From contig NIVC01001035.1 in assembly GCA_002269645.1 (NCBI GenBank), positions 186,001 to 250,000 of the forward strand: DNA of 64,000 nucleotides, read 5' to 3'. Below, piece after piece: positions 23,031 through 29,597 of this stretch; the stretch's first letter is position 1, and each line of letters opens with the position of its first letter. Under the pieces are notes generated by a model. It ran no database searches. It worked only from the letters and a program-made list of their open reading frames with translations, and was not told the DNA's origin. The position numbers were made by a program, and so were the translations under genes. Source of the stretch: Macrostomum lignano. Its lineage: Eukaryota.

Positions 23031-25417
23031 ATGTGCTTGAAGCAGGTCCTCACCTTCGAAGGGCAGGATCTGGTCGAGGACGCCCTCTGGTCACTGCGGC
23101 CTGGCTGGCTGGTCAAATTCAAAAGCGGCCACTCCTGGCAAACCGGGGTCTACATTGGCATCGGATTGCTGAGCATCTCCGAAAATGGCGAGTCGTTTGT
23201 CACGCCACGACAAGAGGAGTGTGATACTGGCAACACCAGTCCGCTGCATCACCTGGTATGTCACCTACCCAGGTGCAGTTCCAGCCGTGAAGGTGTGCTA
23301 GCAATCAAGGACTTTCGAGAATTGGCCGAGAACTCTGAATCCATTAGGGTTTTTGAGTGCAACTGCGACGAGGCTAAGCGGAAGAGCATCATTCGTGCCT
23401 GTCTGACGCGGCTGGGAGAAGTGCGAGTCAATTCCGCCGAACTTTTTGAGCACTTCTCTGCGTGTAGGAAGGGGCAGTGGAAAACAATTTTCACAAATGG
23501 CTTTACTCTGCTTTGCGACGGTTTTAAAAGTCTCATTGGGCAGAGGCCTGCCACTGGAACAGCAAATGACTTGTCATCGGATTTGTGAGTGGGTGAAAAA
23601 TTTTCCTAATCTGGCATCAACTTGGGTCTTTTTAAGATCGGTTTTCTGAGTTTCTGGTGGTGACATCAAAGTCTGAGTAGGACACTGACATCACCAGGGT
23701 CTCAAACATGTAAATGGTGCTTGGGTCATCAGGGGTAGTTTTATAAAGTGCCAAGGTTTCACCATCTTACGTGTACATTTTGCAATTTCGACTCACTAAT
23801 ATCACATGACTATAAGCGATAAACCAATTACAGGCACATCTTTCTGCTGGAAAACACATCTGACTGGGTTGACGCCATTTCTCCAGAAAGCCGCCAGCGA
23901 CTGAGCGACTTCTCTAGAGCGTTGCTGGTTTCACCAAATTATGAAACAGCAAACGGCTTTGAGACATTTCTAAGTTGGATTGCGGGATTTAAAAGTGACA
24001 GTCGTGGCATCGGGACGAAAGCCTTGACAACAACTGCGTCACACTATCTGCGTTCGTTTACCAGCGCCAGGATTTCGCCGAAGTCAAAATGGTCTGGCGC
24101 AGCAGTGCAGTTTGAGAGGCTTAACGACAGTCTACAAGGTACGACCATGATAGTGTGGGTAACGGGTGCAAATGTACATATATGTTTACTTAGCGGGTAA
24201 ATTGTACCCTCTCAACTCTCGTGCCAAACTACATGTACATGTACTGTAGCTACATGTAGCTAGCTGCGTTCGATGCCTTGAGGCTTGAGTCAACCACAAA
24301 CAAAGTGCGGGGTTGTGTGTGTGTGATCGTATCTTTGTCTTGCCACCTCGCTCCTGAACTGTAGCCCAGTGAAATAAATGCGTCAATATATTTAAGGTTC
24401 ATTTTTTACCATACATTAATTCGGCCTATAGTTGATTTTAAGAGCTCGATCATTTTGTCATCTGACATTTCAGGACTCGACTCTTTCTTTAACGAGCTAC
24501 TGAATAGCTCCACCAGAAGGTGACTAATGTTTTCAATAGCTACATGAAATTACATACCAGACATTGCGAGTATGCCATTAGTAAACTAACTTTGCACTTC
24601 TTGTACTCCTAACTTCAGCGAGGAAAATGCTGCAATTGCCGCTCCTGAGAGCGATACTCGCACTACCCGACGCAACCCTCCGTCTCTGGATTGCTACCCG
24701 GTAACGTCTCCGCAAGGATTCTGCGCGGTCATCAACATCAACAACTACGATGACAATACGAACCTTGGCCGCCGCTCCGGATCAGAGCAAGACGTTGCTC
24801 GCATCAGAGAGGTGTTCGGAAAGCTCAACTTTGTGATAGAAGTCAAAGAGGACTTGACGTCACACGAAATCGGCCGTTTTTTGACGAATTTAGCCCACGA
24901 CGAAAGGCTGGAACAGCACGGATGCTTCGTGCTCTTCTTGATGGCGCACGGCTCGAAGCGAGAAATCTTCGGTAGCGATGGAGAGACAATAGACTTAAGC
25001 TACATTGTCAAGTCATTTAGGTCCCCAATTTGCAAGGGCCTGCGAGGTAAGCCCAAGATCATCGTGATTCAGGCTTGCCGAGGCATGCGACTTCAATTCG
25101 GTCAGCGCGGCCCCTTGAGAGATAGCTCGTCGGATAATGGAGAGTTCGGGTGCTACTCTCCTAGGGGCAAAGACTTCTTGGTGTGCTTTGCAAGCGGCGG
25201 AGATACTCCGGCTTTTCGAGATGCAAATACCGGTTCCGACTATGTACAGGCACTGTGCCGCGAGGTTGAGGCGCATTACCAAAGTGAGCACATTGTGGAC
25301 ATTGTCACCCGCGTCAACAATGCAGTTTGGCGAGCTCCGGTGCAGCAGGGAGAATTGCAACTCTACACAGCTCCCGAGTTTACTAGCAGTCTCACGAAGA
25401 AGTACTACTTGAGCTAG
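23031..25417 (+). CDS. Gene A: catalytically dead LRAT-like domain fused to an intact caspase; exons 23031-23584 and 24619-25417 (450 aa)
   Basis: Phase-2 GTGAGT...TTCAG intron joins the exons in frame. Caspase has MAHG and QACRG. The LRAT H-box His is replaced by Gln (WQTGVYIG) and NNCEHF by ELFEHF. Confidence 0.82.
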
Positions 25418-26287
25418 TTGAGATTCAGCTTTATCAACTGGAAACTGATTTAATAAAAAACTACTGCTTTCCCTTCATAGTATTTGAAAGTACCTCCTTC
25501 AGCTAATTATGTTGATTTCTGAGTAATGTGAAGTTGAAAATTAAAATCCATTATCCAATTGAGCTTCATTTTGCCGTATTAACGCTAATTAGTTACCCGA
25601 TCAACTTGACTTGAACGCGTAGTTGATCTTTAAAAAGCAATGCGTTCTTGCTGTATGAAGCGTCTCTTATCAACTACTTAAGATTCACTAAATCATTACC
25701 GCTTTTAAAACAATGCCTGTTATTTTCATGTACGCTACAGTTTGTATTGTAACGCTACCCAGCTGAAAAAAATGCTTAGAACTTTTGTTGCTCCTTTTCT
25801 ACCGCTTTAAAAAAATTTATACATTTTTCCACAATATAATCACTGTATACTTTTGTAGATTATTTATCAAAAAATAACTTTGCACTCTTCCGTAGATCAC
25901 CTGATTTTGCATACGATGTTTTGTTTTTTGAAAAAAAATGTCTACTGAGCAGTTTCCGACGAGTCCACTTGGTCAATTGCCTTGAAAAGCAAAAATGAAA
26001 AAGAATTGTGCGTTTATCTGTTCAAAGACAAGACTATTTTTCTTGCTACAGAGGAATGAAATTCTGCTGTCCTATTGTAGTCGATGTCTGCATAGTTGGA
26101 CATTGTAAACAGCCAGTCCTGCATTGGTGCACTTGTGGCAAACTACGGCAAGTCCTTGGAATTGCCGTGGATTTTTCTTTTAAATTAAAGCATGCACACA
26201 GACTACTCAACTCATCTATCGACGCGTGTACGTTCGGTGAGTTTAAGACATGCGCTACTGCTAAGGCACTTTGCTAACTTTGAAAAA

Positions 26288-29200: not shown

Positions 29201-29597
29201 CTCCTCCGTGTGCCCCGGGCTCAGGGGCAAGCCGAAGCTTTTCTTCCTGCAGACGAGTCAAAAAGAGGAGCTCAAAGTGTTGCGCCACGCCTCTTCGGAT
29301 AGCACGCTGGAGATGGAGCTGCGCGATCTCGCTGCGAGGGGAACCGACTTCATTGTGTGCCGCTCGACCAGCTCCCTGTCTAGCAGCTCCTGCCCCAGCT
29401 TTGTGCAAACCCTCTGCTCGGAGATTGAGTCGCAGCACAAGGAAGCGAATATTTTGAAAATTGTCACCAGCGTCAACAATCAGCTGATTAAAAATAGTGC
29501 CCGACAGAGTGCCGAGGATGAAGCAGACCCAACCAGTAAAGCTCCTGAGTTCATATCCAGTCTCACCAAGAAGTTCTTCTTCCGGCCCTGCAATTAG
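26288..29597 (+). CDS. Gene B: LRAT domain, unknown ~110-aa domain and pseudo-caspase; proposed exons 26288-26823, 27771-28105, 28582-28618, 28871-29597
   Basis: LRAT FHFCIYLG and NNCEHF are intact. The caspase fold is clear (GFCLVINI, LMAHG, GKPKLFF) but QACRG is replaced by QTSQK. The splice path is frame-consistent, though the donors at 26824 and 28619 are weak. Confidence 0.65.
26852..27746. repeat. (TAC)n microsatellite, ~0.9 kb
   Basis: Visible directly. It produces the spurious poly-Tyr/Thr/Leu ORFs. Confidence 0.99.
28616..28851 (+). mobile_element. tRNA-derived SINE, copy 2 (3'-truncated)
   Basis: Aligns with copies 1 and 3 and stops at GCAATAGCTG. Confidence 0.85.

Follow-up and report, generated by a model that had tools for sequence, protein, structure and literature searches.

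LRAT-caspase fusion genes with complementary active-site losses at a locus of the flatworm Macrostomum lignano

We analyzed a 64-kb stretch of the genome of Macrostomum lignano, a free-living flatworm (assembly GCA_002269645.1, contig NIVC01001035.1; contig position = window position + 186,000), called the window hereafter, which carries on its forward strand two adjacent genes, A (23031-25417, with an ATG at 23031 and a stop codon at 25415-25417) and B (26288-29597, the stop codon ending at 29597), each joining an LRAT-type domain to a caspase. Over the 23,406 bases that were compared, the contig and the window are identical. The region contains spliceosomal introns and a 900-bp (TAC)n microsatellite. 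Together with a third paralog located outside the window (P0042, BOX15_Mlig004795g2, Mlig004795.g2), the two genes form a family with a single protein plan: a Met-Cys N-terminus, an LRAT/PLAAT-type domain of the NlpC/P60 superfamily, a poorly conserved linker of ~100-140 amino acids, and a C-terminal caspase. An earlier reading made from the letters alone, the sequence-only reading, had proposed that gene A combines a dead LRAT domain with a live caspase and gene B the converse; this complementary loss of catalytic residues in two LRAT-caspase fusion genes was borne out by our alignments, and all the motifs that had been named in the two genes were found where that reading had placed them. The LRAT domain does occupy the prodomain position, and Pfam finds no DED, CARD, or DD in these proteins.

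The whole locus has a second genomic copy on contig NIVC01001680.1 (L001), 95-98% identical to the window, which fits the recent large-scale duplication known for this M. lignano strain (PMC5730564). The GenBank annotation of the assembly was built from StringTie, TACO, and de novo transcripts (mapped de novo plus genome-guided) with TransDecoder, and the pipeline discarded low-expression, non-coding, and repeat-overlapping transcripts (PMC5730564).

Gene B has a transcript-derived GenBank model (PAA73134.1), annotated and intact on both contigs, in which the LRAT and caspase exons sit in one coding sequence (CDS). The annotated protein gives the junctions 26844/27771, 27940/28036, and 28105/28871, and the annotated span measures 3406 bp in the window and 3164 bp (242 bp shorter) in the second copy. 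The true start is probably the ATG at 26288, not the one at 26192 that gives the longest open reading frame (ORF), because all family members, including ten neighboring LRAT genes, begin with Met-Cys. An earlier model of the gene (26288-26823, 27771-28105, 28233-28270, and 28833-29597), with an open frame of 557 codons, was rejected: the transcript-derived protein uses other junctions, the 95 nt that precede exon 3 (27941-28035) behave as an intron, with indels and 22% substitutions between the copies, and the second copy has a 38-bp insertion between 28833 and 28871. The indel pattern between the two genomic copies fits the annotated exons and not the rejected model. If read on from exon 1, the (TAC)300 repeat of intron 1 would encode poly-Tyr. 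In intron 3, a tRNA-like stretch at 28610-28690 (GGGGTTGTAGCCTAAT...GGTTCGATTCCCG) is probably the remnant of a tRNA-derived short interspersed nuclear element, longer and more complete in the second copy; ARAGORN called no tRNA in it.

The LRAT domain of gene B (Pfam E-value 2.5e-11, 44-47 bits for a gathering threshold of 24.3 bits, PF04970) displays the motifs YFHFCIYLG (26390-26416) and NNCEHF (26687-26704). Its caspase domain covers positions 2-233 of the 233 in the Peptidase_C14 profile (E-value 1.2e-31 with the annotated protein, to 1.3e-32), and residues 8-240 align end to end with caspase-3 (E-value 3.5e-25 against the PDB caspase-3/7 structures). MAHG (29121-29132) is present, and QACRG is replaced by QTSQK (29250-29264), with a Ser at the position of the Cys. 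The dead caspase announced by the sequence-only reading is confirmed, with the addition that a 5-residue deletion also removes the L3-loop (S1-pocket) Arg; the His and the first Arg are kept. Judged by these residues, gene B is a pseudo-caspase and would not be an active member of the family. Its intersubunit linker contains an Asp within the motif SSD-S, aligned with SSSD-N in gene A and ESTD-S in the third paralog, and could be cut at this Asp by an active relative, as for a cleavable decoy.

No model of gene A is annotated on either contig, where the upstream syntaxin gene and the downstream gene B are annotated. We predict four exons (Table 1) encoding 567 amino acids, with all splice sites GT-AG. 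The join 23584/24619 put forward by the sequence-only reading is indeed in frame and skips the probable second and third exons. The four-exon model is preferred over the two-exon one because the extra exons have no indels relative to the second copy, where the introns do carry indels, and because they are homologous to exons of transcript-supported paralogs: the C-terminal part of exon 2 (AAVQFERLNDSLQ) to exon 3 of gene B (AEIQLERLAIEPRL), and the mini-exon, which has the same sequence in the second copy, to exon 4 of the third paralog (NEQEELLSAW). A word-index search for the spliced protein of gene A, and look-ups of the two gene models by exact sequence, returned no match. The sole public protein containing gene A is a chimeric one of 1,822 amino acids (P0028, UniProt A0A1I8G9H9), an older, ab initio-style WormBase ParaSite model. 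This model merges syntaxin, genes A and B, and two LRAT genes, five genes in a row, under the name "t-SNARE coiled-coil homology domain-containing protein".

The N-terminal domain of gene A has lost both the H-box His and the NCEHF Cys of LRAT proteins. In HSWQTGVYIG (23130-23159), Gln37 stands where 11 of the 12 aligned paralogs have the His, and in AELFEHF (23436-23456), Leu138-Phe139 replaces Asn-Cys; both substitutions are unchanged in the second genomic copy. Pfam gave no match to this domain (exon 1). Nevertheless, a hidden Markov model of nine neighboring LRAT exons scored it at 55.5 bits (200 shuffled sequences reached at most 3.9 bits), and it is 34% (tblastn) or 35% (multiple alignment) identical to the LRAT exon of gene B. 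By these scores and residues, it is a genuine member of the LRAT family, predicted to be catalytically dead. The caspase domain of gene A is a complete Peptidase_C14 (Pfam E-value 2e-40, profile positions 2-233 of 233) with caspase-3 and caspase-7 as best PDB matches (E-value 5e-34). It carries RRSGS, MAHG (24941-24952), QACRG (25070-25084), and AFRD, so that the catalytic His and Cys and the Arg/Gln/Arg of the S1 pocket are all intact. The caspase His (xxHG)/Cys (QACxG) dyad is thus present in gene A and incomplete in gene B.

Table 1 Positions of the LRAT-caspase genes and of associated elements in the window
Feature	Position	Strand	Description
Gene A exon 1	23031..23584	+	Met-Cys start, pseudo-LRAT domain (Gln37; Leu138-Phe139)
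Gene A exon 2 (predicted)	23834..24138	+	Linker, begins HIFLLEN; canonical AG/GT sites, open frame
Gene A exon 3 (predicted 46-nt mini-exon, GLDSFFNELLNSSTRS)	24474..24519	+	Restores the frame into the caspase exon
Gene A exon 4	24619..25417	+	Complete Peptidase_C14 with Arg-His-Gln-Cys-Arg all present
AATAAA 3' of gene A stop codon	25452..25457	+	Sequence motif
Gene B exon 1	26192..26844	+	As annotated in PAA73134.1; LRAT with intact H-box His and NCEHF Cys
Gene B exon 2	27771..27940	+	Linker FVFLLRDEND...; no indels relative to the second copy
Gene B exon 3	28036..28105	+	Linker ASATVERVPAEIQLERLAIEPRLR
Gene B exon 4	28871..29597	+	Full-length pseudo-caspase; MAHG kept, QTSQK, L3-loop Arg deleted
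AATAAA 3' of gene B stop codon	29624..29629	+	Sequence motif
(TAC)300 microsatellite	26852..27751	+	Occupies most of gene B intron 1
Upstream motif, three tandem copies spaced by 11 bp, GGAAT(T/C)(G/T)CCGTGGA	22849..22884	+	~150-180 bp 5' of the gene A ATG; candidate shared cis-element
Upstream motif GGAATTGCCGTGGA, one copy	26158..26171	+	5' of gene B
Upstream motif, one variant	58815-58828		5' of the LRAT gene at 58964
LRAT cluster	30254-34271, 40311-41838, 43480-44833, 46151-48671, 53040-56539, 58964-59503, ~63522-63860		LRAT-domain genes

The third paralog, found by a search with the 495-amino-acid protein P0002, is a transcript-annotated protein of 542 amino acids with an LRAT domain (Pfam 58.6 bits, threshold 24.3) followed by Peptidase_C14. 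It contains QHF, NNCEHF, CRPGS, MAHG, QACRG, and AYRN, both catalytic centers being intact, and lies alone at an unrelated locus on another contig, where its neighbors are genes for an inositol-phosphate kinase and a lectin-like protein. The third residue of the LRAT triad is ambiguous in gene B and in this paralog, being either the His of VRH or an aligned Gln. Their LRAT domains are 51% identical, gene B being the closer of the two window genes to the third paralog, and gene A is 33-41% identical to its paralogs. The three genes have the same domain order and exon phases; the linker intron positions match between gene B and the third paralog, and exon 2 of gene A runs unbroken across a region that is an intron in gene B. 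The three LRAT domains also have a common insertion that is not found in the neighboring LRAT genes, which indicates a single fusion event before the three genes split, and the three caspase domains are most similar to M. lignano ankyrin caspases (35-41%). The fusion was probably born, on these similarities, from the local cluster of LRAT genes and a caspase of the flatworm ankyrin-caspase group. As far as residues can show it, the ancestral type was bifunctional, since the third paralog keeps the LRAT His/Cys and the caspase Arg-His-Gln-Cys-Arg. The occurrence of this doubly intact gene alone at another locus suggests that the fusion works as a single bifunctional protein, from which A and B would be derived, half-dead copies. 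We therefore think it reasonably probable that A and B are old paralogs from a family specific to Macrostomum, lying next to each other on the same strand and shaped by duplication, degeneration, and partial subfunctionalization, and not a demonstrated two-part machine.

Comparison of the two genomic copies showed different levels of constraint on the two genes. In gene B, only 2 of 555 sites differ in the LRAT exon (0.36%) versus 3.7% in the adjacent intergenic DNA (p = 2e-5), and the caspase exon diverges by 0.83% versus 4.0% in intron 3 and the 3' flank combined (p = 1.5e-5). In gene A, the exons diverge by 3.5% versus 2.65% in the surrounding non-coding DNA, and the ratio of nonsynonymous to synonymous substitution rates (dN/dS) of the caspase exon is 0.71 (p = 0.38 for a difference from 1, that is, neutrality), so no constraint is detectable there. 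On L001, this exon has a 6-bp deletion and three 1-bp deletions that place MAHG and QACRG out of frame; ~2,400 nt of other exons have zero 1-bp indels between the copies, which argues against a random assembly error. The sequence-only reading had looked for lack of expression and decay in gene B. That gene is transcribed and less diverged, and it is gene A that is unannotated and frameshifted in its other copy. The caspase of gene A, with its intact site, appears from its substitutions to be under relaxed selection. The window copy of gene A has an uninterrupted frame of 567 codons with all the catalytic residues kept, consistent with a gene that was functional for most of its history.

Several points weigh against this picture of subfunctionalized paralogs, one of which is slipping. 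The exon joins of gene A are a prediction only, and the structural support for its LRAT fold is weak. Indeed, the AlphaFold2 model of the N-terminal domain is mediocre (predicted local distance difference test score 65.6), and Foldseek returned only weak matches for exon 1, including PLAAT3, HRASLS3, PLAAT4, and TIG3 (best E-value 0.11); the match to PLAAT3 (7zom) had a probability of 0.72, a target-normalized template modeling score of 0.50, and an E-value of 0.17, and none reached E <= 0.001, so that the model is merely consistent with an LRAT fold. The caspase exon of gene B does not differ significantly from the 3' flank taken alone (1.8%, p = 0.15), and the substitution counts between the copies are small. 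As for gene A, low expression or the annotation filters, instead of silence, could explain why GenBank lacks it, the three 1-bp deletions could in principle be PacBio assembly errors, exons 1-3 do not evolve simply neutrally (dN/dS ~0.35, p = 0.008), and the derived amino acid changes (6 versus 7 across its two copies) single out neither copy as decaying. The hydrophobic tail that anchors PLAAT proteins is absent from the LRAT domains of A, B, and the third paralog, and membrane targeting is something we infer.

The same observations bear on a first alternative, in which gene A is a silent or decaying relic, that is, a nascent pseudogene, only B and the third paralog work, and the reciprocity is a coincidence of degeneration. 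We regard this as unlikely, though it deserves serious attention: gene A is missing from the transcript-derived annotation of both contigs between annotated neighbors, is public only inside the chimeric five-gene model, has lost the frame of MAHG and QACRG in its second copy, and diverges in its exons at least as much as non-coding DNA does, with a caspase exon that looks neutral. However, at only 33-41% identity to its paralogs, the window copy retains its frame and canonical splice sites, and none of its catalytic or S1-pocket residues is lost, which suggests long-term purifying selection until recently, and it also retains the upstream motif, a poly(A) signal, and the constraint measured in exons 1-3. 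The loss of one duplicate after polyploidization is normal even for functional genes, and the loss of one of two gene A copies after the recent genome duplication would be expected on that ground.

Caspases are activated by prodomain-driven dimerization. Enzymes of the PLAAT/LRAT families act on phospholipids through a Cys-acyl intermediate, and domains of the LRAT type are also able to dimerize. On this general knowledge of the two families, the LRAT domain, which stands where other caspases have a CARD or a DED, may act as a recruiting or dimerizing N-terminal module and would add its own thiol-acyl chemistry (phospholipase A/acyltransferase), presumably directed at membranes. After the duplication, gene B would have kept the LRAT center and lost caspase catalysis while retaining the whole caspase fold, and gene A would have kept the caspase center and lost LRAT catalysis. 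Gene B would now be a lipid enzyme whose pseudo-caspase half probably serves as a dimerization or regulatory surface and is maybe a substrate of the active paralogs, and gene A, if expressed, would be a caspase with an inert LRAT-fold prodomain. The proposals of the sequence-only reading that the dead LRAT domain is a sensor or decoy for pathogen inhibitors, and that lipid chemistry and proteolysis are coupled, are speculation.

A second alternative takes A and B as an obligate active/decoy pair, in which the two caspase folds heterodimerize (as in caspase-8/cFLIP-L or CED-3/CSP-3) and thereby join a live protease to a live LRAT enzyme, or in which B tunes or blocks the activation of A and serves as its substrate. 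The genes are same-strand neighbors with a common upstream motif that is almost absent from the rest of the 64 kb: GGAATTGCCGTGGA has 5 matches in the window versus 0.46 expected, all of them 5' of A, B, or the LRAT gene at 58964, and may indicate common regulation. Moreover, the caspase fold of gene B is complete and its exon less diverged than intron 3 and the 3' flank combined, the intersubunit-linker motif SSD-S/N is aligned in A, B, and the third paralog, and the region of the last beta-strand is near-identical in the two proteins (APEFTSSLTKK in gene A, APEFISSLTKK in gene B). This region is the dimer interface of caspases. Against this, conservation of the SxLTK strand is a general feature of caspases, neither contig has a transcript-based model of gene A, the caspase exon of this gene is unconstrained between the copies and frameshifted in the second one, and the doubly intact third paralog could equally partner gene B with better evidence of being alive. 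We consider a working partnership of A and B improbable.

The N-terminal domain could also be a permuted papain-fold thiol peptidase or isopeptidase (PPPDE/NlpC-P60-like) instead of a lipid enzyme, the family then coupling two proteases. Pfam Peptidase_C97 (PPPDE) matches were found with E-values of 0.0018-0.13, in neighboring paralogs this domain is joined to a UBR-box-like finger, a module of the ubiquitin/N-degron system, and the missing membrane anchor of A, B, and the third paralog would fit as well. These PPPDE matches are nonetheless below their own threshold, where the LRAT profile scores 44-59 bits (threshold 24.3) in B, the third paralog, and the neighbors (44.5 bits for one of them, P0004), and the closest solved structures are PLAAT3, HRASLS2, and PLAAT4, which makes a second protease a doubtful reading of this domain.

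A bolder extension of the paralog scenario would make the LRAT-caspases a new cell-death or immune executioner, in which the caspase fold controls the fused, membrane-acting phospholipase/acyltransferase by dimerization or by cleavage at the conserved Asp of the linker, gene B being a protease-dead, lipase-live effector switched on by gene A or by Mlig004795. If true, this would be a functional parallel, built by gene fusion, to the relationship between caspases and gasdermins, and we hold it to be quite unlikely. That the fusion is an artefact of gene models, with separate LRAT and caspase genes joined by prediction, can be dismissed as highly improbable: the joins of gene A are only predicted and the older WormBase ParaSite model clearly over-merges neighbors, but the joined CDS of gene B (on two contigs) and of the third paralog come from transcriptome-based annotation, the three paralogs have identical domain order and exon phases, and the caspase exons begin mid-codon with no start codon or promoter-like gap before them.

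At least ten further LRAT-domain genes form a cluster (Table 1), with genes A and B at its edge. Most of the cluster genes begin with Met-Cys, keep the H-box and NCEHF intact, and end in a hydrophobic tail. An anchor-like segment (LAAPLVQLPRILLG...) is present in these neighbors and absent from A, B, and the third paralog. The second exon of most of the cluster genes is Cys-rich and has a weak similarity to zf-UBR (UBR-box; E-values of 3.5e-4 to 4e-3, below the Pfam cut-off). The gene pairs at 46151-48671 and 53040-56539 are head-to-head, near-identical duplicates, and the LRAT copy at 32685 has a degenerate NCEHF. Met1-Cys2 is invariant in all 12 LRAT paralogs of the window and in the third paralog (alignments A1 and A2); that the Cys exposed by Met removal might be acylated or function as a Cys N-degron, the N-degron being of note given the UBR-box-like finger of the neighbors, is pure speculation.

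Other elements were observed in and around the cluster. One copy of the upstream motif reads TTCCGTGGAA, a palindromic arrangement of STAT- or Rel-like half-sites. At 35324-38825 (+), an annotated gene encodes 1,109 amino acids with ~14 ankyrin repeats, and its C-terminal region has weak matches to Mab-21_C (E-value 0.002) and NTP_transf_2 (E-value 0.011) and contains GSYSEGWG...DIDVM. From these matches, the gene could be a relative of cGAS-like receptors, suggesting an immune-gene neighborhood. The window also contains a full-length-looking non-LTR (long terminal repeat) retrotransposon ORF of 1,353 amino acids with endonuclease and reverse transcriptase (3492-7553, -), a Gypsy-type LTR-retrotransposon gag-pol with ORFs of 415 and 1,656 amino acids (7363-13496, -), and a retroelement integrase-like fragment (49862-51300). 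Minisatellites with periods of 23, 21, and 12 bp are found at 18816-19785, 20162-20673, and 40922-41257 (43, 24.5, and 28 copies, respectively), the first two in or near the last intron or the 3' region of the syntaxin (t-SNARE) gene, whose annotation ends at 22472.

Caspases are normally recruited via death-fold prodomains. An LRAT/PLAAT-type enzyme fold in that place is a new architecture among the caspase innovations of lophotrochozoans, one that a dedicated survey of these proteins appears to have missed. The three paralogs (both halves intact, protease-dead, and lipid-enzyme-dead) are a natural experiment for testing the contribution of each half and the origin of pseudo-enzymes after duplication, in an animal that is tractable, RNA interference and transgenesis being established in M. 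lignano. The fast-expanding LRAT cluster beside an ankyrin/Mab-21-like gene hints at immune or conflict biology. One member may be decaying and a functional pair is improbable; the biological weight of the family would be high only if control of the fused lipid enzyme by the caspase fold were demonstrated.

The sequence-only reading had suggested looking for LRAT-caspase fusions elsewhere. An exhaustive HMMER search with the LRAT exon of gene B against 1.84 billion representatives gave 26 matches, and a caspase was present only in M. lignano proteins among them; the top match was a 539-amino-acid protein with 99% identity (cluster of PAA65113.1 and PAA73134.1, M. lignano). With the caspase exon of gene A, the best match in a set of 5.8 billion proteins was an M. 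lignano caspase (36-38% identical). Among the papers searched, none links LRAT or PLAAT to caspases, pseudocaspases with PLAAT included, and none of relevance was found for the Mlig gene identifiers. The LRAT-caspase architecture thus appears to be undescribed and lineage-specific. Lophotrochozoan caspases have been reported with ankyrin (in flatworms), kinase-like, Z-binding, PARP, and ROC prodomains (Krasovec et al. 2024, PMC11463336). For M. lignano, the same survey lists only a caspase with a kinase-like prodomain and "no other" unexpected prodomain in platyhelminths, LRAT being unmentioned, and according to it ANK-caspases occur only in parasitic flatworms and are lacking in free-living planarians (PMC11463336). 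In our Pfam searches, three M. lignano proteins encoded outside the window (P0043, P0044, and P0046) are ankyrin-repeat caspases (Ank and Peptidase_C14).

In functional terms, the nearest of the known systems are the pair caspase-8/cFLIP-L (CFLAR) and, in C. elegans, CED-3 with its inactive homologs CSP-2/CSP-3. They resemble the locus in that gene B, with its dead caspase fold, lies beside a paralog with an intact site, and gene B likewise retains Asp motifs in the intersubunit linker, as cFLIP-type decoys do. They differ from it in several ways: the prodomain position is occupied by an LRAT/PLAAT domain and not by a DED or CARD, the "decoy" carries its own potentially live enzyme, heterodimerization is only conjectural here, the "active" partner is missing from the transcript-based annotation, and the caspase domains are nearest in sequence to the effector caspases 3 and 7. 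With PLAAT/HRASLS and LRAT proteins (PF04970, NlpC/P60 clan), gene B, the third paralog, and the neighbors share the H-box His and the NCEHF Cys in permuted order. In contrast to these enzymes, identity is very low (PDB E-value ~0.01), 20-30 residues are inserted between the two His positions, the C-terminal transmembrane anchor is missing from A, B, and the third paralog, the domain is fused to a caspase, and gene A has lost both His and Cys. In evolutionary terms, the nearest likeness is with the unconventional caspases of lophotrochozoans (PMC11463336), which also arose by lineage-specific domain shuffling onto the caspase N-terminus; the family described here differs from them in that its LRAT prodomain is itself an enzyme fold and in that its members show complementary active-site loss.

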